From Eukaryota sp. TZLM1-RC (lineage: Eukaryota > Protista > Metamonada: BaSk clade), in the NCBI GenBank assembly GCA_040285825.1, contig JAUPSS010000003.1, forward strand, positions 992,001 through 1,056,000: a DNA stretch of 64,000 nucleotides, written 5' to 3'. The notes beneath the pieces are model-generated. The model did not search any database and had not been told where the DNA came from. It was given only the letters and a program-made list of their open reading frames with translations. A program made the position numbers and the translations under genes. Shown here piece after piece: positions 4,727 through 59,996 of the stretch (position 1 is the first letter of the stretch; each line of letters starts with the position of its first letter).

Positions 4727-7354
4727 ATGCAAAAAACAATTGTATTTAACCAGAAAGTTGGTTCTTTTTGTCCTCTTTTTGAACAAAATTTCGTAAATAA
4801 TTCCGAAGATTTAACTAATATAGCACCGAGAAATCAGTCATCCGAGAAATTAAGTAAAATTTTTGAAGACAAATGCTTTGACAACAAATGGTCCAAGGCT
4901 TTGTCAGCTTTAAGTCCCGGAGTTAAAGCATCCAACAATGAAAATACATCAGATAAACTAAAAATACTTCATCCTTATGAAGGCCCTATAATGGATCAAA
5001 ATTTTTACGGCACTTACTGGGAAAATTATCCATTGATGCCATCAGAAGTATTTTCGGTGATCAAAAAGAGACCACGCGGTAAGTCTGCCGGACTTTCTGG
5101 TATTACTATTGATCATGTACAAGCCGCCATTATTTCGTCAGAGGATTGTCTTGGTTTATTAACCAAATTTTTCAATAAAATATTGAATGGACAACTCAGA
5201 TATCCAGATGAATTAAGAAGTTCTCGTTTGACTGCACTTGTCAAAAATTCAAAAATGGATGTTCGTCCTATTGCAGTCTCTGAGAGCTTACAGAATATTT
5301 TTTCTGCGTGTTGCTTAAGCAGGTTCAATGAGAAAGCAAAAAAGATTTTATTACCCTTCCAATATGGAATTAATACCACGGATGGAGTCTCTTCAGCGAT
5401 ATTTGCTACTGATGTATTATTTCGCCAAAATGAATCCAATAATTGTATGTCATTGGATTTCAGTAATGCTTTCAATTCACTCAGTCGTCGCAGTATCCAT
5501 GGTGCTCTATTGCAATATATGCCGGAATTAATGCCGTATTTTCAATCAACATATTGCACATATTCTAATTTACATTTTGGTGATAGCATTTTGAGTTCAT
5601 CAAGTGGTGTAAAGCAAGGAGATCCGTTAGGACCTCTTTTGTTTTGTTTGGCCATTCATCCTATTTTACTGCAAATTCAAGAGATGTTTCCTTCGCTAAA
5701 GATGATTGCATATATGGATGATGTTGTGCTAATTGGTGATTTAAATATTGTGAAACAAGCAACTGTATGTTTTAAAGAATTATTTACCAAAATTGGTCTC
5801 CGACTCAATTTACTTAAATGTGTTTTGTTATCGAATTCTCCAGTTTCCACAATAGTTGTTGGTATTGAAATTCAAGCCAAATTATATTCAATTGAAGCTA
5901 TTCGTCATTTGGGTTCGTTTTTAGGAAATAATGATGAAATTACCAAAAAATTGTTTGAAAAGTTGAACTCATTTTCTGACAAAATTGACCGAATGATGAA
6001 TTTAGATATACAAAAACACATCAAATTTACCATTATAAGACTGTGTTTTAGTTCTAAATTTAATCATATATTTCGATCTACAAATCCTCTCGTCACTAGA
6101 CATTTGGCTCAGAAGTTTAATGAGTTACGTGCAAAAGTTCTGTCTCAATTACTGGGATGTAAAATGTTCCAAATTCCAGATCATGCTTACCTTAGTCCAC
6201 ATTATGGCGGTTTAGGGTGGACGAAGGCTTCTATTCTTACCTCGTGTGCTTTTGTTGGAGGATGCAGAAATGCAATCTTTGAGTTTTCCGAAAGATTTGC
6301 AGATTGGGAAGATTTATTGATGACAACGCAAAGTTACACTGTTTTTGCATTAAATGACGAAATTTCAAAAATTGATGTAGAAAAATGGGGTCGATGTTTT
6401 CCCCAATCATTCAATGGCAATATTCCAGAAAAAAATGTTTTAAATTTGAAGTACACTCTTCGAACATTACAGAAACGATTGACTGGAATGTATGAAAAAG
6501 ATCTTTATAATAATATATGCAGCTCGGCTGTTTTAAATCAAGATCTTCACTCATTGTTATTGGAAAAGGGTGTTTGTGAAAACAAGTCGTCAGATTCTTC
6601 ACTTTTTGTAACCATGGTACCACGAAGATTTGGATTGTGTGCCACTAATGAAGCATTTGTAACAAAAATGAGATTATATTTGAATATTCCCATTAATCAA
6701 TTATTATCAAAAGACAAATGTATTTGTTCGAATTCACCTCAACTCACTTTGCGCCATGCTCTGAATTGCTCTAAATTGATAACTTATCGTTCTTCATTAC
6801 ATGATGCTGTTAGAGACACTGTTTTCAATATGGCACAAACTGCAAGAATATCGTGTATCAAAGAGCCCCTGCTGAAGGAAACACTTTTTCTGAATAATTT
6901 TGGTTCTGATGATAGAGGTGATGTATACTGTGATTGGATTGATAATTCTGAAGCTATTGTTGACTTTGTCTCATGTAATGTTGCAAATGATACTTTGCTT
7001 CACAGAAGAAAACTTAATCCTGTGGCTGCTCTGGATTTTAAAGCAAAAGAGAAACATAGAAAATATGAAAAAGATATTGAAGAGGCTAATGCTGATAGAA
7101 ATACACAGCTGGTTTTTATTGCTTTCCCATTTTTGCTAAACGGAAGACTATCAGTAGAAGCAGAAATTTTTTTGAATGACTTCCAAAAAATGGTTCAAGA
7201 AAAAACAATGGAAAGATTCGATATATTTTTATGGCACTCTCGGATTCAATTTGCCATTATCAATAGATTACCTCGGTTTTTCAATCGAATTACAGAAGGT
7301 TTAGCTAGACAGCAAGCACATAAAGATTTTGTAGAGGAAATCTTGGTTCAATGA
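4727..7354 (+). CDS. Reverse transcriptase + restriction-like endonuclease polyprotein of a CRE-like non-LTR retrotransposon (family A)
   Basis: 875-aa ORF with VRPIAV, LDFSNAFN, GVKQGDPLGPLLF, AYMDD, CIC...H...C zinc motif, HDAVRD, EP...RGD...D...KHRKY RLE motifs. Confidence 0.92.
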   Translation: MQKTIVFNQKVGSFCPLFEQNFVNNSEDLTNIAPRNQSSEKLSKIFEDKCFDNKWSKALSALSPGVKASNNENTSDKLKILHPYEGPIMDQNFYGTYWENYPLMPSEVFSVIKKRPRGKSAGLSGITIDHVQAAIISSEDCLGLLTKFFNKILNGQLRYPDELRSSRLTALVKNSKMDVRPIAVSESLQNIFSACCLSRFNEKAKKILLPFQYGINTTDGVSSAIFATDVLFRQNESNNCMSLDFSNAFNSLSRRSIHGALLQYMPELMPYFQSTYCTYSNLHFGDSILSSSSGVKQGDPLGPLLFCLAIHPILLQIQEMFPSLKMIAYMDDVVLIGDLNIVKQATVCFKELFTKIGLRLNLLKCVLLSNSPVSTIVVGIEIQAKLYSIEAIRHLGSFLGNNDEITKKLFEKLNSFSDKIDRMMNLDIQKHIKFTIIRLCFSSKFNHIFRSTNPLVTRHLAQKFNELRAKVLSQLLGCKMFQIPDHAYLSPHYGGLGWTKASILTSCAFVGGCRNAIFEFSERFADWEDLLMTTQSYTVFALNDEISKIDVEKWGRCFPQSFNGNIPEKNVLNLKYTLRTLQKRLTGMYEKDLYNNICSSAVLNQDLHSLLLEKGVCENKSSDSSLFVTMVPRRFGLCATNEAFVTKMRLYLNIPINQLLSKDKCICSNSPQLTLRHALNCSKLITYRSSLHDAVRDTVFNMAQTARISCIKEPLLKETLFLNNFGSDDRGDVYCDWIDNSEAIVDFVSCNVANDTLLHRRKLNPVAALDFKAKEKHRKYEKDIEEANADRNTQLVFIAFPFLLNGRLSVEAEIFLNDFQKMVQEKTMERFDIFLWHSRIQFAIINRLPRFFNRITEGLARQQAHKDFVEEILVQ

Positions 7355-7422
7355 TAGTCGTCCCATTAGTTATGAAATAATTTAATTAAGTGTGCATGTT
7401 TAAATATTTTTTTAAAAAAAAA
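4727..7422 (+). mobile_element. RLE-type non-LTR retrotransposon, family A (5' end not defined)
   Basis: RT-RLE ORF followed by a short 3' UTR and an A-run at ~7414-7422. Confidence 0.85.
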
Positions 7423-7462
7423 CTCACTCAGCAATCTTTTCGACTTGTCGTCATCTTTTTTC

Positions 7463-8501
7463 ATGTCATCTTCTTCGCGCTCTAAACGGATAGGATCATA
7501 TCTCTTAGGTCCTAAACTTGGTGAGGGTACCTTTGGTTGTGTTCGAAAGGCCGTCCATCAACCTACAAATTCTAAAGTAGCCATCAAAGTCTTGGAGAAG
7601 TCCAAGATTGTTGATGAAGCTGATGTGAAAAGGATAACGCGAGAGATACGTATTCTACGCTCTCTCAGCCACTCACATGTAGTACGATTACTTGAAGTTA
7701 TTGACTCTCCTCGCAATCTCTACTTAGTTACAGAATACTGCAGTGGCGGAGAACTGTTTGACTACGTAGCAGCTAACCGTCGTCTCGATGAAGCGGAGGC
7801 ATGTAAAATGTTTCGTCAGTTAGTTGAGGGTGTGGACTACTGTCATCGCAAAAAGGTCTATCACCGAGACTTAAAGTTGGAGTATGTTGCATTATTTCGG
7901 TACTAATCACATAAACATCCTGATGGATTCTGAGAAGAACATTAGGATAATCGACTTTGGTCTTTCCAACAGTATTAACGGTAATGAGATGCTTAAAACT
8001 GCTTGTGGTTCACCTTGCTATGCTAGCCCTGAGATGATTGCCGGATCACGGTATGATGGGAAATCTACTGATATTTGGTCTTGTGGCATCATTCTCTTTA
8101 GTATGTTGTGTGGTTATCTTCCTTTTGAAGATCCTTCCATCCCAAATTTGTATTCTAAGATTCTCTCCGGCACCTTCACAATTCCGTCCTTTGTGTCATC
8201 TGAAGCCAGTGATCTTATTAGGAAACTCTTAACCGTGGACCCTCAACGCCGTTGCACTATTGATGGAATTCGAAATCACCCTTGGTTTAAGAAATTTAAC
8301 CAAGTCTTTGCTCCTCAAGAAGACGATCCTGATGAAGTCTTGGATGAAGATATTCTGAGAGAATTAACCTCAATTGGTATAGACTCTGAACATGTCGTTT
8401 CTTGTCTTGAAAGCAAAAAGTTCAACTCTGCAACTTCTGCCTATATGCTCTTGAGTGCAAAGAAAAGAAAAGGGCAAAGTATATCACTTTCCAAAGTGTA
8501 A
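7463..8501 (+). CDS. AMPK/SNF1-related Ser/Thr kinase with UBA-like tail; exons 7463-7881 and 7913-8501
   Basis: GEGTFG, VAIK, HRDLKLE/N, DFG, TACGSPCYASPE and DIWSCG motifs. The two ORFs join into HRDLKLENILMD only by removing 7882-7912. Confidence 0.93.
7882..7912 (+). other. 31-nt spliceosomal intron, GT...AT boundaries
   Basis: GTATGT...TACTAATCACAT; removal restores the kinase catalytic loop. Confidence 0.8.
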
Positions 8502-8950
8502 TAGATTTTTTAGTATTTGTATTAACCTTTTTTGTTTTGTATATGTGTTGAAATTAAGTTTTTGATAAATTTTGATGGTTTTGTGAACTGGAATTTTTAT
8601 TCAATTTGGATCGACACAGAAATCAGTACATTCAATCTTATAGTTAGAAAACAGTAGGTAATCCCACATTACTTGATAATTGTATTTGGAATAACTGCTG
8701 TGGCAAAATAAAATTCAAATAAATTTAATACCCAAGTTCGATTTCGTTTTTTGGTGTTTTTCAATGCAATTCACGAATGAACCAATTATTCTCACATTCA
8801 AGCTATAACAAGGAAGTAAGCAGAGCAAGCTTTAGTAGACAGGGGCATGTACAAGCATCGAGTCCAACTTTTTGGTATTTGGAGCATTTTTGAAACAATT
8901 TGGAGTTTGAAGAAAAATTTGGTTGGGAAATTTTTGATGCAAAAATGAAG

Positions 8951-9104
8951 TGTTAGTCTTGAATAGTATTTATAGTTAATAGTTTAGTTATTAGTATTCC
9001 GCCTGTTAGCTTAAGAAGAGAGAATACAATTCCTCTTCGTAATAAATTACACTTCTGTTACTCTACATTGTATGTCAAACAATAACCAACAGCCAAGACC
9101 ATCA
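8951..9104 (+). repeat. 5' LTR of element 2
   Basis: Direct repeat of 16193-16346. Confidence 0.97.
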
Positions 9105-10916
9105 ATACGTATTGGGTCGTCCCCGGCTCAGCGTAGGATCCTTGAGGAAGAGACTGGTCCCTCTTCCTCACCACTAACCACAGACCCTGCTTCCGTGCCT
9201 CCTTCTTCGGTTGAAGCTTCTGCGCTTCCTGAAGCAACTCTTCCCGAGAGTTCCACCCCAAAGGAAAATAGTTCCCTTCCTGAGGATTCCGTTCCAATGG
9301 AAGGAAGTTCCCCTCCTCTGGATTCCGTTCCTGTGGAAGGAGACAGCCCTCCTAAGGATTCTATTCCTTCGGAAGGAAGAAGCCCTTCATTAGTCTCCTA
9401 CGACGATGAAGATGCTGAGGACTCCGTTGCTCCTCTTCCTCCTTCACGTTTAAGGGCGTCTGAAGTCCCACCTTGTCCCCTCCCAGAAAGAAGTTCTGAA
9501 GTACCAACTTCACCTTCTATTCAGAACAGAGAGACTGTTCAACCTTCTCTCACGTCAAAGGAAGGATTGGAAGATCAACCCTCTTCCTCCTCTACTAAGG
9601 CCATTGAAGTACCATCTTCATCCCTTTCATCTAGTTCTGAGGTTCCACCCTCTCACTCTCAACAGCTTCTCCCTCCAGTTCCAACTGTTAGGAGAACTAT
9701 CCAAAATCCTGCTGTTCCAACTTCAGGATCTCCTCTAACTTCAACAGTTAGTGGAGTTAATAATCTGTCTGTTTCCCCTCACCCGGCTAGTGATTCCATT
9801 CCTAGCCTTTCGAACCTTCCTTCGTTTCTTTCCGAAGAGCAAAGGAAAAGGTACGAACAAATCTTTTCAGATTTGGTTGAGTACGAGGAACCTCCCAAGG
9901 AATTCTCCCCTCTACATCAACATCAGGTCCCTCCCACGGCACCTTCTTCTGAAATTGACAAAATTCCTGGTGAGGTCTCTAAAGAGTATATAGAGCGTTT
10001 TCTCCAAGAAGAACGAAACTGGGAACACAGAAAAAGATTGGACAAAGAGATTGAAGCTAGAAGAGGAACATCCTCTACACCTGCTCAACTTACCCCTTCT
10101 CAAACTAGCTCCCACGCTAGCTCAAGTGTTCATCATGGTGCTTCCCGTCAGCACAACCCTTACGCTAGATATAGGGACACACGAGTCATTCCAGAGGATC
10201 CAGAAGCCATCCCTCCCACGGAGATGAGCAACAAACGTCCTCCTTTCTACGGTCCCAAAGTCGAGAACGACTTAGGAATATGGATCTCTCCCAGAATTGG
10301 TCCATTTCTTTCCGATGAAAGGATCACCCCAGAAACCTCCAGGAATGACCCTGAACCAACTTATGAACCAAGACCCGGAGTTAGGTTCATGAGAACTACT
10401 CGAGAAGGAGTATTCAGACGCTTCGCTGGAGATGAAGATAACCTCTTCTTAAATGTTTACAACCCTTGCCCATACCCTAGGTTCAGCCCTGGGTACAACG
10501 CATCTCTCGATATCCTTATCGACAGAGATTATAGAACAGGGTGGTGGTTTACCGAAACCACATATGGTGAAAGACTCTTTCTATACGACAGACGTCCTGA
10601 CCATATAGCTTCATATTGTGATCCTGACCACAGAAGATCTGGCAATCTTCAAAGAGCCCTCCAGCTTGTCACCGTTTTCCCTGGATGCATAGAATCCAGG
10701 ATGTTGAAGTGGGTAATGGTAGAAGGTCGTATAGAGAAAACACGCTTGGTTCAACCAGCGATCTCTTCTTACCAAGTTCCAGCCCAGATTGAAGAGATAG
10801 AACCTTCTCCTGAACCTCACCAACGCGAAGTTCCACCTTCCACAGATCAACCTATGGAAACTTCTACAGAACCCTCGCATAATCCTCCATGGAACAAACT
10901 GAGGAGGATGTTGTAG
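9072..10916 (+). CDS. Element 2 gag N-terminal part (Ser/Pro-rich repeats + unknown domain)
   Basis: 614-aa ORF starting inside the 5' LTR; shares PME(T/Q) repeats with the next ORF in the -1 frame. Confidence 0.75.
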   Translation: MSNNNQQPRPSIRIGSSPAQRRILEEETGPSSSPLTTDPASVPPSSVEASALPEATLPESSTPKENSSLPEDSVPMEGSSPPLDSVPVEGDSPPKDSIPSEGRSPSLVSYDDEDAEDSVAPLPPSRLRASEVPPCPLPERSSEVPTSPSIQNRETVQPSLTSKEGLEDQPSSSSTKAIEVPSSSLSSSSEVPPSHSQQLLPPVPTVRRTIQNPAVPTSGSPLTSTVSGVNNLSVSPHPASDSIPSLSNLPSFLSEEQRKRYEQIFSDLVEYEEPPKEFSPLHQHQVPPTAPSSEIDKIPGEVSKEYIERFLQEERNWEHRKRLDKEIEARRGTSSTPAQLTPSQTSSHASSSVHHGASRQHNPYARYRDTRVIPEDPEAIPPTEMSNKRPPFYGPKVENDLGIWISPRIGPFLSDERITPETSRNDPEPTYEPRPGVRFMRTTREGVFRRFAGDEDNLFLNVYNPCPYPRFSPGYNASLDILIDRDYRTGWWFTETTYGERLFLYDRRPDHIASYCDPDHRRSGNLQRALQLVTVFPGCIESRMLKWVMVEGRIEKTRLVQPAISSYQVPAQIEEIEPSPEPHQREVPPSTDQPMETSTEPSHNPPWNKLRRML

Positions 10917-12187
10917 TAGAAGTCAGTGATGAGTCCCCAACTCCAGACTCAATTCCAACTGTGCTAGCACCAATGGAACAAACTCCAGCACCTGTACAGC
11001 CTATGGAACAATCAGTGGTTCCACCCACACCTCCTTCCACTGGTTCAACAAGTTCACAACACACGGCTCAACCAACACCTTCTACGGTTAGTTCTTCACG
11101 TTCTACTTTCTCAGGTACTTATGATAGTAACCTTCTCCGATCTTCCATGGTGGGATCAAGAGATAGAGACAACAGACGCAGAGACCGCCCCAAACGTCCA
11201 ACTCTCGACGCGACTGATTTAAGAGATGTTGATAAACTCCTCAAGTTTGTTAACAAGTTTATCCTCTGGAGTCGTACAGACAGAATTGTAGACGAGGCTC
11301 GAGGCAACATCGAGGATCCTGCCCAAGTTGCTTTAGCCAGCGAAGTTGCTAGACTTCGTGAAGAACTTGAACGAGCTAGATCAGCAGAACTGGCATCTGA
11401 CCAACGGTTCGACAGTGAACCAATTCATGAATGGGATCTTTTCAGATCTGCCATGCGCATTAGTCCTAGAGGCTTAGCTGAATGCGTTACACCTGAAGCT
11501 CTCAACGCTTTAAGGTATCAAGGCACTGGCCTTTCAATTTCCTCCGCCATGGTCCCAACCAGCAGAGACGAACGCAACATTTGGGAACAGATCCTAAGGA
11601 GAACCCAATTCAGCAGACTGGATCAAGCCCTGGACGCACTTCATGCTGTACACATGGATTGGTCTGAGAGAGATTATGGTAACAGATGGATAGACTTCAT
11701 GCTTAATACAGGCAGAGTCTTAACGCGTTCCACCGCTATCCAAGACGTTCGTGGTCTGACTCATCAAATGAGAAACATCACCATCCACGGAAACCCCGTC
11801 GACCGACTCCCCGAATGGGAAATTGCTTCTCACGTCATTGAAAGCATCGGTATTACCATCATCAGGGACAGACTCCTCAGGATCTGGTCCAATCCCTCCC
11901 ATTACTACTCAGATGGCCACACCCTAGGAGAATTTTTCAGTGTCCTCCAAATAGAATACGAAAATTTCTGTAATGCTAGATCTTTTAAGGAGCAGATCAA
12001 TCACGTGGACTTCTTGTATCAAAATAGAATCTCGTTTCAGACTGAGAACCGTCGCAGACAAACGGTACCTTCTCCCCCTGCTATCCCCAAACCAAGAGGT
12101 TCCAGCTCTGGCAGGCGCCCAAAACAACAACGACGAGAAGGAAGCTCTACTCAACCGTCTTCCACTCAGTCTGATGCCAACGTCTAA
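10889..12187 (+). CDS. Element 2 gag C-terminal (capsid-like) part
   Basis: 432-aa ORF homologous to element 1 ORF 2028-2678 (KLLKFVNKFILW / KILEFIVNFANW; PIHEWDL / AIHEYDF; IWEQIL..TQF / IWEFLL..TQY). In frame with the zinc knuckle and pol across a TAA. Confidence 0.75.
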   Translation: MEQTEEDVVVEVSDESPTPDSIPTVLAPMEQTPAPVQPMEQSVVPPTPPSTGSTSSQHTAQPTPSTVSSSRSTFSGTYDSNLLRSSMVGSRDRDNRRRDRPKRPTLDATDLRDVDKLLKFVNKFILWSRTDRIVDEARGNIEDPAQVALASEVARLREELERARSAELASDQRFDSEPIHEWDLFRSAMRISPRGLAECVTPEALNALRYQGTGLSISSAMVPTSRDERNIWEQILRRTQFSRLDQALDALHAVHMDWSERDYGNRWIDFMLNTGRVLTRSTAIQDVRGLTHQMRNITIHGNPVDRLPEWEIASHVIESIGITIIRDRLLRIWSNPSHYYSDGHTLGEFFSVLQIEYENFCNARSFKEQINHVDFLYQNRISFQTENRRRQTVPSPPAIPKPRGSSSGRRPKQQRREGSSTQPSSTQSDANV

Positions 12188-15100
12188 TGCAATTTCTGTA
12201 AACAAATGGGTCATCCGACTGAAAGGTGCCCTAGTGAGGACTGCCAAAGAAGCAAAAAGTGGAGAGAGCAACAAGCTCAACACAAAGCTCGAGGCAGAAG
12301 TTCTAGAGGTTCTGGTTACCGTAGTCGAAGAGGCACTTGCGGCAGAGGCAGAGGCTCTTCATCATATAATAAACGTTCCCGTCACTATTTACACAGTTTT
12401 GAAACCATACCCCCTACAACTACAACACATTTCCACACAGAAAACACAACATGGAAAGATTCCCTAATCAATCCTTTGGCCAACTTGGAACATACCAAGA
12501 CGCATAACATTCAAGCTAATTTCTTCTCAGAACAAGCTCAATATGATTCTGATACATTATTTATGGTACGATCCATAAAGTCCACAACCAACTGCCTTCA
12601 ATTAAACTTCTCGATCAACAATGTCGAGGTTAAAGGCATAATCGACTCTGGCGCAACATGCTCAGTAGTCACGGAAGACGTCATCAGCAATTGTAACATG
12701 GCACGTTCCAACGAAACCATATCCTACAAGATTGCTGATGGATCCACCTCACAGTCCCTCGGTACTGCCTCTGGAACCCTTAGTATTAGACTAGGCTGTG
12801 TTACCCAGATTGTACATGTGAAACACAAGTTCAGCATCGTTCCTGGACACGAGACCATTCTCATTGGTGCCGACTTGCTGAGTCACCTTGGACTGATGAA
12901 CAACAAGGGCATTTATATTAGAATGGACGACGCCTGTCGCACATTACTATTACCTGAAGCTGAATTCGATCATCGAATATCACAAGCTTCGGAAGTCGTC
13001 AACGTTTCCACACGTTGGTTGGAACACATCAACTCATCTGGTTGTACCATCAACCTCGACAACGACCATTTCAAGAAGTCCCTACTTCAAACTTTGAAGG
13101 AGTTCGAAGACGTATTTACCCTCAAGCCTCATGCTGAAGGTATTGATTGCCCTCCCATGGAAATCAACTTCTACAACGAAGACGTCAGAGTTAGAAGACC
13201 CCCCAGGACCCTGAATCCAGCCAGGCTAGAGGTCGCTAACCAAATTTTCGACGAACTCGTAGACTCAGGGTTTGCTGTCCCATCGAACCATGAGTTCAGC
13301 TCCCCTGTCTGTCTAGTGGTCTACCCAGATCACCGTAAGCCCCGCCTTACTGGTGACTATAGTGGCAAGGACGGAGTCAACGCCAACACCATTCCTGTTG
13401 AGCCCAACCTTCCAAGGATCTCCGATGTGCTGGTATTTCTCTCCCAAGCGAACTACATAGGCACCCTTGACCTCCCCAAAGCCTTTTGGCAACTCAAGAT
13501 TGCCGAAAGGATTGGCAGAAAAACAGCCCTGAGCATTCCTGGCAAAAGCATCATGTTCAAACGTGCAGCTTTTGGCCTAAAGAATGTCCCAGCCGTTTTC
13601 CAAAACGTCATGGCTGACATCTTCTCGGGAGACGGTGTCTTCATTTACATAGATGACATCATAATCATAGGTTCAACCTTTGACGAATTCATTGAACGCC
13701 TCCGTCGCGTCCTTGATCAAGCCAGATGCAAAAGAGTTTCCTTGGGACTTCCAAAGTGCCATTTCGTGACTTCCAGACACCCAATCAAGATACTGGGCAG
13801 TGTTTTCCAAAACAAACAGCGGACTATCGATCCCACTCGCGGTGAATCTTTGCTGAATCTACCGAGACCAAAGACAATCAAAGACGTCCGCAGCCTCGTA
13901 GGATCAGTCAACTTCATTAGAGAATGGCCTCCTCAGGTATCTGAGCTCATCGCTCCTATCATCAGATTGACTAAGAAGGATGGAAATAACTCCAAAGTTA
14001 AACCCAAACCCCGCGCGCAACGCCTTCAATGGACCGACATGCACGACGGACTCCTTCAAAAGATCAAAGAACTGATAGCGAAGCACATGCCGCTCAGCTT
14101 ACCTCCGCTGGAAAACCAAATTTTAATTAGTTGCGACGCATCCGACATTGCTGTAGGCGGCGTCATATGGGAACAAATCGAACAAGTCGACGACCCCGGT
14201 ACCCCCCTGATCAACAGGAAATGTAGGCCTATCAGCTTCTTCAGCCGGTTGTTAACCAACTCGCAAAAGAACTGGCCGACAAACCAAAAGGAACTCTATG
14301 CTATCCTAATCATGTTAACTCAAAGTGGTTTTGAAAACTACTTGAAAGGAAGGAAACTGGTTATATTCACAGACCATCAAAACCTTACCTACATGTTCAC
14401 GGGTCCTGAGAAGAACAAAATTGTAACAAGATGGTTACCCATATTCTCTGAATTCTGCTTTGATTTGGTACATACCAAAGGGGAAGATAACTTCTGGGCT
14501 GATATGTTGTCTCGAATAGTTCCGCCTATAGACCATCAAGAGATCAATCATTTGTCCCATCAAATGCCTCCAAATTTTCATCCAATATTTTACATTGATA
14601 AAATTGATGGAACAGAAAATGAAAGATACTACATCGAAGACTTAAACAACTTCGAACGTATCATGGTCATCACAGAACGATGTTCCAACGACCTGCCTAT
14701 TTTCGAGCCATGGCTCTGTAGGATTAGGTCCGAACAGAAGCTTGCCATAGCTTCCAAAGACCCCTCTTTCAACAACTGTGTTCATAACAATCATCTTGAT
14801 TTATATATGACTCACGACAACAAGATAGTGATTCCCAAATCACTCATTAAGGACACCCTTAACTTGTTGCATGGACTTCTGCAAGGAGGTCATCCAAGCA
14901 AAGCTGAAAGCCTGAACAAGCTCAGGAACAGCGATTATTGGTGGCCAAACATGCTCACCGACATGAATAAGCACGTCCAAGAATGCCCCTCCTGTCAGAA
15001 AACAAAGCCAGTTCCCAAACTGCATGTTCCCCCAACCGGTTCATTGTGGGCTGACAGACCTTTTGCTCGCGTCAACGGCGACGTCATTGGTCCTCTTCCA

Positions 15101-16198
15101 GAAGATCAAGAAGGCTACAAATACATCCTCGTATTTATTGACAGCTTCTCTAGGTTCACGATCATCGTGCCTTTAAAAGAGATAAATGCCAATCTTACTG
15201 CAGATGCATTAATTTGGAAAGTCTGTGCCATCTTTGGTATTCCATTTCAAATCCACAGCGATAATGGACCCGAATTTTCCAAGGCTGTCTTTGACGAATT
15301 AAGCAAATTTTTGGGCATAGAGGTGTCAAAGTCAATACCTAGGTTTTCTCCGTCCAACGGCTTGGTAGAGCGCCGACACAGAGACATCCTGCAAAACCTA
15401 CGGAAATTGCTCGTAGACTTCAATGCCTACGATGTGTGGTCTGAATACTTGCCTTATGTGCAATTATTGATCAACTCTTCCAAGAGCTCAATAACCAACC
15501 ACACCCCATACCAAGTGATCTTTGGCTCAGATGTGTCCCCCAGATCAGACCCTGGCAAAATTCTTGAAATCATTGAAAGCTCGACGTCTGAGTCATCTTT
15601 TATTCAAGAAATTCAATCTAAATTTCGAAGATTGAAAGAGAAACAGGAAAAGGCAGCACACCATCAAGCTTCCAAAGCTTCCAAGCTAACTAGATCGTCA
15701 ACTCCAAACCCTTTTGAAGTTGGTCAATTGGTATTGAGAGCATATGGCTCTTCCGCTAAGCTTCATGGAGACTATTTAGGACCCTTCCTAATTACTGAAA
15801 TCGTATCCAATTCGTCTGTGAACATTAAGAATCTCTGCACAGGTACGATTGTCCAAGCTAGCGTCAAACACTTAGCTCCCTGGCACTCCAGCTTGCCCAC
15901 CAACGATGAGTTCCACTCCTGGGTCGCTGCAGGTGATGTCGAAGAACACATCATTGAAAAAGTGCTCAGTCAGGAAGGTGACTTTTGCCAAGTGCAATGG
16001 CCAGGAAAAGAGATCACCACTGAGCATGTGTCTACTGTCCAAAATACTGCCGCGTATAAAGACTTTATCAAGACTTCAAAAGCACGTCGCCGTACTAAAT
16101 CCGCTCCTCCCAAGAAGCGTCATATTTCCATTAGTTCACCTCCTGTGACTAGAGCTTCCAGGGCTCGTCGCTCGAAAGAGAGGAAAAGGCAGTGTTAG
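12188..16198 (+). CDS. Element 2 zinc knuckle + pol (protease, RT, RNase H, integrase, chromodomain-like C-terminus)
   Basis: CNFCKQMGHPTERC, IIDSGAT, FIYIDD, CDASD...KEL...TDH...ADMLSR, H...H...CPSC, D...SDNG...VER, and C-terminal IIEKVL...VQWPG...TTE. Confidence 0.95.
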   Translation, partial: CNFCKQMGHPTERCPSEDCQRSKKWREQQAQHKARGRSSRGSGYRSRRGTCGRGRGSSSYNKRSRHYLHSFETIPPTTTTHFHTENTTWKDSLINPLANLEHTKTHNIQANFFSEQAQYDSDTLFMVRSIKSTTNCLQLNFSINNVEVKGIIDSGATCSVVTEDVISNCNMARSNETISYKIADGSTSQSLGTASGTLSIRLGCVTQIVHVKHKFSIVPGHETILIGADLLSHLGLMNNKGIYIRMDDACRTLLLPEAEFDHRISQASEVVNVSTRWLEHINSSGCTINLDNDHFKKSLLQTLKEFEDVFTLKPHAEGIDCPPMEINFYNEDVRVRRPPRTLNPARLEVANQIFDELVDSGFAVPSNHEFSSPVCLVVYPDHRKPRLTGDYSGKDGVNANTIPVEPNLPRISDVLVFLSQANYIGTLDLPKAFWQLKIAERIGRKTALSIPGKSIMFKRAAFGLKNVPAVFQNVMADIFSGDGVFIYIDDIIIIGSTFDEFIERLRRVLDQARCKRVSLGLPKCHFVTSRHPIKILGSVFQNKQRTIDPTRGESLLNLPRPKTIKDVRSLVGSVNFIREWPPQVSELIAPIIRLTKKDGNNSKVKPKPRAQRLQWTDMHDGLLQKIKELIAKHMPLSLPPLENQILISCDASDIAVGGVIWEQIEQVDDPGTPLINRKCRPISFFSRLLTNSQKNWPTNQKELYAILIMLTQSGFENYLKGRKLVIFTDHQNLTYMFTGPEKNKIVTRWLPIFSEFCFDLVHTKGEDNFWADMLSRIVPPIDHQEINHLSHQMPPNFHPIFYIDKIDGTENERYYIEDLNNFERIMVITERCSNDLPIFEPWLCRIRSEQKLAIASKDPSFNNCVHNNHLDLYMTHDNKIVIPKSLIKDTLNLLHGLLQGGHPSKAESLNKLRNSDYWWPNMLTDMNKHVQECPSCQKTKPVPKLHVPPTGSLWADRPFARVNGDVIGPLPEDQEGYKYILVFIDSFSRFTIIVPLKEINANLTADALIWKVCAIFGIPFQIHSDNGPEFSKAVFDELSKFLGIEVSKSIPRFSPSNGLVERRHRDILQNLRKLLVDFNAYDVWSEYLPYVQLLINSSKSSITNHTPYQVIFGSDVSPRSDPGKILEIIESSTSESSFIQEIQSKFRRLKEKQEKAAHHQASKASKLTRSSTPNPFEVGQLVLRAYGSSAKLHGDYLGPFLITEIVSNSSVNIKNLCTGTIVQASVKHLAPWHSSLPTNDEFHSWVAAGDVEEHIIEKVLSQEGDFCQVQWPGKEITTEHVSTVQNTAAYKDFIKTSKARRRTKSAPPKKRHISISSPPVTRASRARRSKERKRQC

Positions 16199-18026: not shown

Positions 18027-19813
18027 ATGGATAACGTTCTACAAACTACAACTGTGGGAGCGTCTGTCAACCAGTTCTTCGACTCAGAGGCACAAGAAGC
18101 AATGGAACGCCAGTTCCAAGTTCTTGCTAGTATTGGAGCTCATGCTACTCACCTAGCACGACTCTTTGTTCTCCAATACCCAGAACACTCTATGTGGCTT
18201 ACTCAAAGCCAGTTCTGGAGCCTCTGTTTCGACTTTGTTTGCCAAAGTGAGCCTAAACAAAGGAGGCCATTTGAAAACCATCCTTTGGTTTACCAAGCGC
18301 TGCAACACCTTGTTCAGCACTTTTGGCCCTGGCGACCGCTGAATGAAACCACCTCAGCCGACGGTGGTAGATTTTGGTGTCTTTCCACTCTTCTTGGCAG
18401 TCGAGCCATCCAACTGCGAGAAGCCTTTTGTCAGTTGCTTGCTGACGGCCCTGTCGTCTGGAAACGCAATTTTTTCAAAAGCTGTGCTCAGTTTCTAAAT
18501 TGCCCCTGGCCCAAGAAATACGCCGACTGTGTACTTCAAGGGATTCAGCCAGATGAGTCAATTTTACAATGGTATCAAGAAATAAACCAGCATATCTTGG
18601 TCCATTGGCTCAATATGACAGCCAACGCCTATATTGGTGGCGGTCAAAATTTGTTCGAAAATTCAATAAGAAACGAACGGTTTCTCATCAATATGGAGTC
18701 TGCTGCAACAATCGTTCAATCTGGCTTGAACATTTTATCTTTTTTAGAAGATAACTGCCCTGATGTGATGAAAAGGCACTCTCTCTCCACTGTCCAGTTG
18801 GTCTCCATGCTTCTGCAGCTTGACTAAAGAAGCAGAAGCTTATTTCACAAAACTAAATGCAAACAAAGAGCTGATGAACAACCCTTATCGGTTTTTTAAT
18901 AAATCGAAATTTATTAACTATACCATTTTTCGAATGGTGATTCCTTGCGGTTTACGTTTACCCAGAAGGAAAGAAAAACTTATAATAGGCCAAATAAAGC
19001 GGAATTTGAGCCCAGGCGAGCCTCTGGAAATAATGATTTTCATAACTCTGAAAGGAAACGAAAATCCAATGTCCATAGTACAGCAAATCCACAGAGAAGA
19101 CCGCGGTTACCAGTGGAACAACAGCCCAATTACAGAGATCCTGATGAAAATTTGTTTTTTGTAGCCATTGATCCCAACCACAGCAATCTTTGTGGTTGGA
19201 AATCACCCTCCGCCTCTCACTCAAGCAACTCCTAACTTATTCCGCTCAGAGCTTCCAAGAGTATCTGATTGAAATAAGTTTACCTTATGTTCCTGAATCT
19301 GAGGAAGAGCCTGAATATGCTTCAATTATGTCTGGAAATTTGCAGCGTGGTGCAAGAAAAAAGCTGAGAAGAAATAAGTTTGATTTCTTCATACGAAGAC
19401 AAAAGAGACTAACTAGTTTTATTAACAAAATTAAACACTTGTCTGAAGGAAGAAGCACTATAGTTTGGTTCGGCAATGGCGGTGGTGGTCCATCTCGTCA
19501 ATCTGTGAAATCCCCCCGAAAGAGATTTCTCAAACAAATCAAAAAACACTTTGAAAGCCTCAAAGTCGGGGACGAGTTTATGGCCTCAGCAAAAGTGAAT
19601 TGCTGCAAGGTCTTTCATAGAAAGACCTATCATGATGACGGAAGGGTAAATAACGCTAAGTTCGATTGCCCTCGATGTCAGACCAACTGGTCTAGGGACA
19701 TCTCAGCCTCCAGAAACCAGCTGGAGATTGCAATTAGTGAGTATTTCACTGGTACTAGGCCAGAACCATTCAGAAGGCCAAGGCGTGTGAGACGTCTAGG
19801 AAGACAGCAGTAG
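18027..19813 (+). pseudogene. Fanzor (TnpB/Cas12-like RuvC) nuclease, copy 1, frameshifted
   Basis: Pieces give SL-PL...CSLT, (T)NGDSLRF, RuvC-I FFVAIDPN, IVWFGNG, RuvC-II GDEF.AS directly before the zinc finger (CC...CPRC), and RuvC-III SRDISASRN. Frameshifts at ~18787, ~18931 and ~19200-19240. Confidence 0.8.
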
Positions 19814-24151: not shown

Positions 24152-25499
24152 ATGGACCCCGTTGACCTCATATGCCCTGATCGTTGGAAACATCGACAAC
24201 CACTGTTTTTAGGTCAAATAAAAGCAACTTCGTGGAGCAACAAAACTCAAGAACTGTTCTGCTTGGAAGACATCATAGTAACCCTTGATTCCAATGGATC
24301 AGCAGAAGCTTATAGTAGAACAACTCTACAACACCTCTGCTCACTTCGTATCAACGATGACTATATAGTACGATCTCTGTTCACACATACACTGACAAAA
24401 TCGGTGATCACCGTAACAACCCTATCTACCGAGTCGCACTCTGCATTGAGAGTGGTTTCATTCCCTTTAGAGTTTGTTGAACTAACTCACAATCATTAAC
24501 AGCAGTCATATACGCAAAGGTGATGCCCCCAGTACGCCTACTTTCATGTTTACAACAGAAATTTTAAAGTACCCAGGATTCGTGGAGTTTGACTCAAGAG
24601 CTAACCGTGCAATTACTTTCAGTGCTCCAGATCAAGTGTATAGAGTGTGGGACCTCAGTACTTACTGTGGATTTCTCTATTCGTTGTCTGCGTCAGATGT
24701 GCTTGAAGTCAAAATAAAGTATGTAATTTATTATTCAGCATACTAACCTCAGTTACGACAGACTGGTTGTGTTTCACAAACCAGATTCCGAATTCTATCT
24801 CAACATCAAAGTGTATGACCTTCAATATGGAAAATTGTTGTGCACAAGTAGACTTAAGCTTGAGTCTCGAGGCTATCCATTCAATGTAAATCCGACAGTT
24901 CTGTATACCGAAAGTGTTGGTGATTCAATGTTTTGTTACTGTCCAATTGACAATAATAATGGTATTTATATCTCAAAAAAACATCTAACTATAGGATATG
25001 TAAAACTAATTAATATAAGAAAATCAACATCAATTAGAATTCAATTGCAAAGAAACAATCAACCACTGAGTTGTCTTCAAAGTGTGGCTTCATTCATGTA
25101 TCTTCATTCAAATCATCGGTATCGTCATCAACAAATTTCTCTAATCGTATAATAATTGCCTTTGGTCGCAATGGAAATACTCTCTTGTTAGACGATGAAC
25201 TGAATATCGTAGCCAAACTCTCAAGTACAGTACTTGATGGCCGGTTTGATGAACACTCGTGTACGATATTAACCGATGACGAGTCATTGTTGGTGAGTTT
25301 CACTGAGAATAAGGACAAGGAAATAGTTGTTAATTGTGTTGATGCAACGACTGGAAAGCATCAAAGGGAGTATTCGATAGGGAAAGAAATGCAAAAAAGA
25401 AACATTCCAAGAAATGGTACATGTATAGCATACCTAAAAGAAGAAAGAGTGTTTGTGGTAGGACATTTGGATAACTCTGTCTCTATTTGGCGACTTTAG
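24152..25499 (+). CDS. WD40/beta-propeller-like protein (plant/protist family with the LKxPGFVEFD motif), 4 introns; start uncertain
   Basis: IVRSLF...SVITV, HIRKG, LKYPGFVEFD...YRVWDL..Y...LYSLS...V.EVKI. The ORF pieces join through introns 24472-24505, 24719-24752, 24962-24994 and 25119-25150. Confidence 0.8.
24472..24505 (+). other. 34-nt intron GT...AG
   Basis: GTTTGT...CATTAACAGCAG; restores FPLD-HIRKG. An AG 3 nt earlier is also in frame. Confidence 0.8.
24719..24752 (+). other. 34-nt intron GT...AG
   Basis: GTATGT...TACTAACCTCAG; joins the frames of ORFs 24546 and 24769. Confidence 0.88.
24962..24994 (+). other. 33-nt in-frame intron GT...AG
   Basis: GTATTT...ATCTAACTATAG; same architecture, stopless 3n intron. 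Confidence 0.7.
25119..25150 (+). other. 32-nt intron GT...AT
   Basis: GTATCG...CTCTAATCGTAT; restores SNHR-IIAFGRNG. The next downstream AG is out of frame. Confidence 0.72.
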
Positions 25500-41232: not shown

Positions 41233-41865
41233 TTATCTACGGGGTCTCCGGAACGCCTCAGGTCTTTCATTGTAGTAGTGCTCACTTATGGCAATCTCCA
41301 GCTGGTTTCTGGAGGCTGAGATGTCCCTCGACCAGAGTGTCTGACATTGAGGGCAAACAAACTTTTCATTGTTCACTCTCCCATCATCGTGATACAACTT
41401 TTGATTGAATACCTTACAGCAATTCGTTTTGGCAGATGTGTAGAATTCATCTCCATTAGGCTTCACATATGTAAAATGTTTCTGAATCTCCTTCAAAAAG
41501 CGCTTCCTTGGGGTTTTCACAGATTGTCTTGATGGCCCATCACCTCCACTGCCAATCCAAATTATGGTTTCTCTTCCATTAGCCATTAGTTTAATTTTTT
41601 CAATAAATCCCATTATTCTTTTTTGCCTTCTTTTAAAAAAATCAAACTTGTTGCGGTGCAGGGCTCGGCGATCTCCATTTATCAGCAGTTGGTCTAATAT
41701 AGTTCTCGGACGGAAGTCGGGATTGCTGATTTCTTCCTGTGTCGGTACCCACATCAAAGGCATTGCTATTTCATTAAGATATTTGTGTAAATTCTTAGCG
41801 AAATAGCAATTTGGTGATGCATGGGTCAGGACCGGGGGGTGAATGATCTTCCTTGCCTTTGGAGA
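41233..41865 (-). pseudogene. Fanzor nuclease copy 2, C-terminal fragment fused to a non-LTR fragment
   Basis: RNKFDFF.RRQKR, IIWIGSG, GDEFYTSAK..CC, CPQC, WSRDISASRNQL; RuvC-I is absent. Confidence 0.85.
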
Positions 41866-42100
41866 GCGCCATAAATAGATATATACTCTTTTCATTGTTT
41901 TTTATTGAACCATTTTTTTGGAAATCATTCAAAAAAATGGGAAAGCAATAAAAACAAGTGGTCTATTTCTATCAGCATTAGCTTCTTCAATATTTTTATC
42001 ATATTTTCTATGTTTTTCGTTTGCTTTAAATTGAAGAGCATCTACAGGATTAAGTTTCCTTCTATGAACCAAAGTGTCGTCTGCAACATTACAGGAGACA
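41866..42100 (-). mobile_element. Fragment of the non-LTR family A RLE region
   Basis: KYDKNIEEANADRNRPLVFIAFPF...KTMKRVYIYLW matches the C-terminus of ORF 4727-7354. Confidence 0.85.
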
Positions 42101-57394: not shown

Positions 57395-57785
57395 GATAAA
57401 AGAAACTCTATAATCGCTTAAAAGAGGTCGACATGTGACAAGAGAGAATGTAATGACATGACAAAACAAACATGATACCAAAAGTATTGAGTGAGAACTT
57501 AACTAAACAGTACAAGAGGCCATCAGAGAACCAAGTGATGCAACTGCTGTAATAGTCCCATTTATTAGGTTGAAACTCAGTTACCTCATAAACAACAAGA
57601 GTCCTGAGCAGATTGTGTTGTGCTTGTATCTCCATTCCACTACGGGGTTTGTTCAATGGAATGTTGTGACTCATTGAAAGTAGAGCGTCAATGAAATCCA
57701 CCTCAGGAGCGAACTGCGTAAGGTTACCCCAAGAAGTGACCATACAAAACCCTGATTTTAACACCACCAGAATAACAGTTGTTGA

Positions 57786-57924
57786 CATAAAAAAATTACT
57801 GTGACCCACCCCAGTCCAAGTGGAGATGAGGGGGCTGTTCTACCACTGTCTCACCACAGTGCAATGGTGGAGGATAGAACAGAAGTACACATTCATGAGC
57901 GTGTACAAGCCACAAAGGTATGTT
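57786..57924 (-). ncRNA. U1: U1 snRNA
   Basis: 5' AACAUACCU; helix H UGUGGC/GUCACA; SL1 UACAC-GCUCAUGAAU-GUGUA (U1-70K-like loop); SL2 loop AUUGCACU (U1A site, 57858-57865); SL3; Sm-like AAUUUUUUUAUG. 3' end uncertain. Confidence 0.9.
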
Positions 57925-57946
57925 AAAGATTTTTTGATTTATCGAA

Positions 57947-59820: not shown

Positions 59821-59843
59821 TGGGAAAGAAATCTTTGTCCTTT

Positions 59844-59996
59844 AGTCTTCGCCTATATGGCTTAGATCAAGTGTAGTATCTGTTCTTATCAGTTTGACAG
59901 CTGATACGTCCTCTTCGGAGGGCTTTCTGTCATCGTATTTGTCTCCACCTTCAATGCTCCCGGCCTTACACCTTTGCTGGGTTGCGTTGTTGGTTC
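59844..59996 (+). ncRNA. U2: U2 snRNA
   Basis: GCC-UAUAU-GGCUUAGAUCAAGUGUAGUAUCUGUUCUUAUCAG...CUGAUACGUCCUC matches the conserved U2 5' domain including GUAGUA; stems IIa, IIb (UUCG), IIc and a 3' stem-loop are present. Confidence 0.96.

Follow-up and report, generated by a model that had tools for sequence, protein, structure and literature searches.

Can a spliceosome depend on an intron that ends in AT? The terminal AG of major-class introns is treated as invariant, which is explained structurally by a pair between the first and the last intron base, G(+1).G(-1). The DNA analyzed here (the window, 64,000 nt) comes from contig JAUPSS010000003.1 of Eukaryota sp. TZLM1-RC (GCA_040285825.1) and contains a kinase gene, its exon 100% identical to the deposited P9112_004478, whose catalytic loop is interrupted by 31 nt that begin with GT and end with AT. 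Skoliomonas litria, a soda-lake metamonad with a free-living habit, has TZLM1-RC as its type isolate (PMC11603281). From the genomic sequence, it is quite probable that this intron (7882 to 7912, plus strand) is real and obligatory and that it is removed by a U2-type spliceosome that takes its acceptor at a fixed distance and tolerates U as the last base. We infer that cutting at this site is efficient, that the U2 spliceosome is the agent, and that the acceptor is picked by distance and not by sequence.

The gene encodes an AMPK/SNF1-like Ser/Thr kinase, with AMPK alpha subunits as its named best matches. Exon 1 (7463 to 7881, plus strand) ends in phase 2 inside the codon for E140, and exon 2 (7913 to 8501, plus strand) supplies Asn141, the DFG motif, the activation loop, the C-lobe, and a short tail up to the stop codon. 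With 7882 to 7912 removed, an open frame for a 335-aa kinase runs from the ATG at 7463 to the stop at 8501 and reads HRDLKLENILMD. The interruption falls between HRDLKLE and N, and the peptide across the join is LKLENILMDSEK. The two exons match adjoining parts of PF00069 (profile positions 4 to 125 and 128 to 263), and in the deposited protein the Gly loop, VAIK, the helix-C Glu, HRD-x-K-x-x-N, DFG, (A/S)PE, and DxWSxG are all intact. The protein ends without the C-terminal KA1 region, whereas its relatives in Carpediemonas and Barthelona have 554 to 570 aa and carry PF02149. Upstream lies an intact reverse-transcriptase ORF of 875 aa (4727 to 7354), which ends about 110 bp before the kinase, and downstream lies an LTR retrotransposon (9072 to 16198) with protease, reverse transcriptase, RNase H, and integrase domains.

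Exon 1 closes with TTG GA at 7881, the intron ends in CACAT, and exon 2 opens with A AAC ATC CTG. Within the intron are the 5′ splice site GTATGTT (7882 to 7888), the branch motif TACTAAT (7901 to 7907; its branch A is predicted to be the base at 7906, which is position -7), and the noncanonical acceptor AT (7911 to 7912), all on the plus strand; at the acceptor A(-2) is kept and G(-1) is replaced by T. These coordinates and letters, as given in an earlier note on this DNA, proved exact when the sequence was reread, and its description of the donor and the branch as canonical for U2-type introns also holds, given that the donor pairs with the U1, and TACTAAT with the GUAGUA of the U2, encoded in the window.

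Retention of the intron would place an in-frame stop, TAA at 7904 to 7906, which is supplied by the branch motif itself. The Asn stands at HRD+7 in 208 of 208 kinase homologs and the spacing from HRD to DFG is 20 in 206 of them; from the GT donor at 7882, the sole cut that gives both the Asn and this spacing is 7882 to 7912. The two AGs that come first downstream, at 7934 and 7937, lie out of frame, as had been claimed, and use of the first in-frame AG (7945) would indeed remove the catalytic Asn, at a cost of 11 residues and not the approximately 10 counted before. A split kinase or a frameshift was rejected because the length of the loop is fixed and the 31 nt, if retained, would extend it by about 10 residues, and an AT-AC intron read in antisense was rejected because the coding frame, the donor, and the branch are all on the plus strand.

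The deposited P9112_004478 is exactly the protein obtained by removing 7882 to 7912, and its gene range exceeds the CDS by 31 nt. Gene models of S. litria were guided by transcriptome sequencing (RNA-seq) and then curated manually (genome paper), and the depositors' junction may rest on that curation instead of on reads. In the genome paper, introns are named once, in the methods, and noncanonical introns are not mentioned. The P9112_004478 protein can be reached by just two 31-nt cuts, 7882 to 7912 (GT..AT) and 7883 to 7913 (TA..TA); since these are synonymous, protein evidence alone cannot set the boundary.

The T itself could be an assembly error that conceals a true CAG end, a reading that the nanopore basis of the assembly favors. 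However, the assembly was corrected with Illumina reads (genome paper), and a paralog of the kinase, P9112_012664, was assembled separately on contig JAUPSS010000009.1 (locus L081, 10001 to 11051, with an open frame). The paralog is 88% identical over 1.7 kb, and its intron, also of 31 nt, differs from that in the window at one internal base and ends in CACAT too. The same T in a separately assembled copy makes an error at 7912 unlikely, and a second intron in the window (25119 to 25150) shows the same change of G to T at its end, so that the error is barely credible. The G at 7912 that the earlier note had allowed for is thus not what this indirect comparison finds. Contigs derived from reads (three DNA-like runs of one sample) span 8366 to 8639, a stretch that has 7912 outside it, and are identical to the window there. 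The duplicated block (7221 to 8951 in the window) extends into the retroelement upstream, of which it contains the 3′ end.

Judging from the T common to both copies, the kinase was duplicated after the AT end had arisen. Between the copies, dS is approximately 0.09 and dN/dS is 0.47. Selection was assessed on changes since the duplication in 85 columns at which at least 95% of 100 homologs agree, polarized with distant homologs and with equal branch lengths and no gene conversion assumed; the window kinase has 1 conservative change (I to V) at these columns, versus 8.9 expected if it were neutral (P ~0.001). P9112_012664 has lost four invariant residues (K138N, D154N, Y187H, and D213N, of which D154N turns DFG into NFG) and is a decaying copy or a pseudokinase. 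With the damage one-sided, on the paralog, the kinase gene of the window is probably no pseudogene, a status which the earlier note had kept in view and against which the purifying selection on the window copy argues indirectly. The selected residues flank the intron on both sides, which suggests that the correctly joined protein is made.

These data bear on the alternative that the AT is a damaged acceptor, at which splicing is weak or absent, in a gene that is either hypomorphic or a pseudogene of recent origin and whose task has passed to another kinase. The single GT-AT candidate reported for Giardia is spliced at just 1.3% (PMC10711314), and a kinase of 335 aa without KA1 that sits between retroelements and has a decaying paralog would fit such a history. 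However, the T predates the duplication, yet all of the catalytic motifs have been kept, with 1 change where about 9 would be due, and a second, unrelated conserved gene requires an AT end too. A damaged acceptor is therefore decidedly improbable, and a functional AT acceptor is the reading that we retain.

The second gene (24152 to 25499, plus strand) encodes a WD40-like DUF7899 protein, and removal of its four introns (34, 34, 33, and 32 nt) leaves an open frame of 404 aa. Introns 1 (24472 to 24505), 2 (24719 to 24752), and 3 (24962 to 24994) are GT-AG introns, and intron 4 (25119 to 25150) is a GT-AT intron; all are on the plus strand. Introns 1, 3, and 4 have an A at -7, and intron 2 has the form GTATGT..TACTAAC plus 5 nt, which makes it a canonical twin of the kinase intron, alike in donor, branch motif, length, and spacing. 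The ortholog in TZLM3-RCL, of a sister species, has introns 1 and 2 at the same positions, and introns 3 and 4 are missing in both sister orthologs. Across the junction of intron 4, the protein aligns without gaps to KAL0249395.1 of GEM-RC, which is intronless, and to KAL0217152.1 of TZLM3-RCL. The model with the AT end scores 903 against the GEM-RC ortholog and 593 against that of TZLM3-RCL. A model that runs on to the following AG in frame reaches 798 and 517, respectively, and the deposited model, which skips an exon, 740 and 428.

That deposited model, P9112_004487, has 349 aa and a 230-nt intron ending in AG, in which the real exon at 24995 to 25118 is left out; homology backs 404 aa for the protein. 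As a real exon was skipped in order to reach an AG, AT ends were not accepted throughout the annotation, and gene prediction that forces AG loses real exons in the S. litria genome. A further candidate AT intron in this gene (24368 to 24401), found by motif only, was rejected because it lies inside an open exon that matches homologs. In TZLM3-RCL, the model KAL0217152.1 misses the first exon and a 31-nt GT-AG intron (locus L090, 9948 to 9978); the full frame of this ortholog starts at L090 9607 and encodes 409 aa.

A branch-type A, at a predicted branch position, stands exactly at -7 in 9 of 9 Skoliomonas introns from two species, a small sample made up of the five in the window, that of the paralog, one helicase intron, and two from TZLM3-RCL. 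Six of the nine end in AG and three in AT, with two of the AT introns being copies of one; among the validated introns of the window, the share is two of five. A scan along both contigs yielded one more intron, which ends in AG. The bases between the branch and the end vary among the nine, and a conserved ACACAG-like sequence is missing from them. A strict motif, GTATGT..ACTAAY plus 5 nt (27 to 36 nt in all), occurs twice in the window versus 0.13 times expected (P of at least two occurrences, 0.003), and each of these two is an intron that frame and homology bear out; scans of the window with looser motifs gave many chance matches. The fixed distance from branch to acceptor, which the earlier note does not mention, is the likely reason that AT is tolerated. 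Both AT introns are in phase 2, with T at -6 and A as the first exon base (+1), features that, with two independent cases, are possibly shared by chance.

Relatives of the kinase in metagenomes (55 to 65% identical) are intron-free at the position of 7882 to 7912: the loop is continuous in 67 of 80, and in the remaining 13 the interruption comes ahead of RD. The AMPK gene of Barthelona has no intron and that of Carpediemonas has a single one, at codon 187; no kinase ortholog was found in sister Skoliomonas by word searches, one of them with an overly strict cutoff, or in two sister loci. Because the kinase relatives have no intron at the site and intron 25119 to 25150 has no counterpart in the sisters, both AT introns look like lineage-specific gains, to which loss in the relatives is an alternative. 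Newly gained introns of S. litria may be born with AT ends.

The two AT introns together help to weigh the boundary. A shifted TAT..ATA unit at 7883 to 7913, introner-like or nonspliceosomal, would be synonymous in the kinase, in the paralog, and, as the codons indicate, at the DUF7899 intron (25119 to 25151), and it would have a 5-bp terminal inverted match, TATGT/ACATA, in the kinase. However, the inverted match of the second AT intron is only 3 bp long, without the shift the donor is complementary to U1 and the spacing is the -7 of all of the AG introns, and neither AT intron folds better than its shuffles (z, +1.2 and +0.3). As for other signs of an introner, a copy of the intron occurs only in the gene duplicate in the DNA examined, and no target duplication was seen. 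Editing of U to G before splicing would be another route to the same protein, but documented splice-site editing is A to I, which is unable to repair AT, and we know of no nuclear U-to-G editing. Other boundaries or another route are, taken together, highly improbable, and the GT-AT boundaries are kept in what follows.

The machinery that would act on these boundaries is represented in the window. A U1 small nuclear RNA (snRNA) gene (57758 to 57925, minus strand; 5′ sequence AACAUACCU) has ACAUAC for ACUUAC, which matches the GTATGT donors; it scores 41 bits, which is under the Rfam gathering score of 69.5, with an E value of 6e-7. All 7 bases of the kinase donor GTATGTT pair with the 5′-end AACAUAC of this U1. 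A U2 snRNA gene (59840 to 59996, plus strand; 92.6 bits) has the canonical GUAGUA branch-recognition sequence; past its Sm region, some 33 positions of the model are missing. Between the two genes lies one for a metallophosphoesterase, and all three belong to a unit of about 7.4 kb that is repeated in tandem beyond the end of the window, where further U1/U2 units lie in locus L087 (6460 to 8663 and 13848 to 16086).

In the mechanism that we propose, U1 would pair with GTATGTT and U2 with TACTAAT, with A7906 bulged, and the 3′ cut would be set by distance, six bases past the branch A, where A(-2) would dock on the branch A. The last base would usually be G, and U would be tolerated, probably by means of a weaker non-Watson-Crick pair with G(+1); the -7 spacing would leave little room for another site. 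In the P complex of yeast, the 3′ site is recognized through two pairs, A(-2) with the branch A and G(-1) with G(+1), and at distances from branch to acceptor of less than nine bases Slu7 is dispensable (10.1101/212811). Since A(-2) is kept in the kinase intron, the G(+1).G(-1) pair alone would need replacing. In U12 mutagenesis, according to the summary in PMC4176328, G at the 5′ terminus is spliced to either G or T at the 3′ terminus; on this basis, AT is predicted to rank second among the ends.

Splicing at AT might instead be the work of dedicated variant machinery, such as a divergent U2, U5, or U6 paralog, a changed Prp8 or U2AF, or a U12-like system. U12-type introns are the best-known case of a short fixed branch distance combined with GT-AT tolerance, and the bases that both AT introns have in common, T(-6) and an A that opens the exon, could be marks of such machinery. 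However, the kinase intron is indistinguishable from the AG intron at 24719 to 24752, and in the window and two further loci (L087 and L088), a scope that is not genome-wide, just U1 and U2 were found, with no U11, U12, or U6atac. The consensus of U12-type introns is RTATCCTT at the donor and CCTTAAC at the branch, and the kinase intron, with GTATGTT and TACTAAT, fits neither. It has the U1-complementary donor and the U2-complementary branch of a U2-type intron and departs from that type in its terminal AG. Variant machinery is accordingly an unlikely explanation, and removal by the ordinary U2-type spliceosome is preferred. The idea put forward in the earlier note, that this spliceosome tolerates a non-AG acceptor, thus gains support from indirect genomic evidence, namely, conservation, the deposited model, the paralog, purifying selection, and the second GT-AT intron.

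Noncanonical termini, including GT-AT, are known in U12-type introns and define a subtype of minor introns in animals (PMC3584512; PMC4176328; 10.1101/2022.09.24.509304). The kinase intron resembles this class in having a 3′ site set mostly by distance from a strong branch, with no pyrimidine tract, and a 5′ G that can pair with a 3′ G or T; however, its donor and branch match U1 and U2 rather than U11 and U12, and its end lies 6 nt after the branch A, not 11 to 13 nt. It is comparable, too, with the introns of other metamonads, Giardia, Trichomonas, and Spironucleus, which are also about 30 nt long, with a GTATGT(T) donor, a branch motif at a fixed distance from the end, and no polypyrimidine tract (PMC6679479; PMC10711314). 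In those three genera the branch and the 3′ site are fused, and in Trichomonas vaginalis the spacing is required, as a moved branch abolishes splicing (PMC6679479). Skoliomonas differs in having the A at -7, in contrast to -8 in the Giardia consensus CTRACACACAG, and degenerate bases between branch and end, unlike the Giardia and Trichomonas type; its AT ends would be in obligatory positions, unlike the rarely spliced candidate in Giardia. In Carpediemonas membranifera (locus L086), two GTTTGT..AG introns of 28 to 29 nt have a branch-type A at -6; with -7 in Skoliomonas and -8 in the Giardia consensus, the length of the ruler appears to depend on the lineage. Judged by its sequence, the kinase intron behaves as a Giardia-type ruler intron would, with a terminal tolerance like that of minor introns and is not a member of the U12 class.

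Among major-class introns, 14 of about 60,000 in Drosophila are GT-AT, 11 of these 14 with RNA junction support, which shows that the spliceosome can use such termini (PMC4528330). For each of the 14, a similar canonical splice exists as an alternative, whereas the kinase intron has no usable AG. Introns of the GT-AT kind are frequently miscalled as AT-AC introns of the other strand (PMC4528330). In the tunicate Fritillaria, transposon-derived introner introns have AG/AC and AG/AT ends and U2AF is duplicated (10.1101/2025.08.15.670264). The major spliceosome is at work there, as it would be in Skoliomonas, and the penultimate A is likewise kept, with AT among the frequent 3′ ends; however, the 5′ ends are changed too in Fritillaria, whereas the Skoliomonas donor is canonical and no transposon family is apparent. 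A mention of GT-AT in the Oxytricha genome paper (PMC13185551), where it is called the canonical motif, is probably a typographical error and was set aside. Our search, from which subscription literature was mostly absent, returned no description of obligatory GT-AT major-class introns in Skoliomonas or other metamonads. GT-AT termini are thus known but rare, and obligatory GT-AT major-class introns in a metamonad would be the new part.

A wider reading, to which we give slightly better than even credence on the genomic data, is that the last intron base is largely unconstrained in the major spliceosome of S. litria. A substantial share of the obligatory introns in its conserved genes would then end in AT and be spliced efficiently by measurement from the branch A, possibly with a change in Prp8, U6, or U5 or a loss of U2AF or Slu7. 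If an organism cannot do without introns ending in AT in its conserved genes, it would be a natural test both of the weight of the G(+1).G(-1) pair and of the spliceosomal components by which that pair is enforced, in a setting where the distance from branch to acceptor is fixed near its physical minimum. The Skoliomonas introns would also link the ruler of Giardia and Trichomonas with the terminal tolerance of minor introns. Elsewhere in the window, an ORF at 19190 to 19813 has a weak Cas12f1-like TNB match (E value, 1e-4) and is Fanzor/TnpB-like, and a second Fanzor/TnpB-like ORF lies at 41233 to 41895 on the minus strand.
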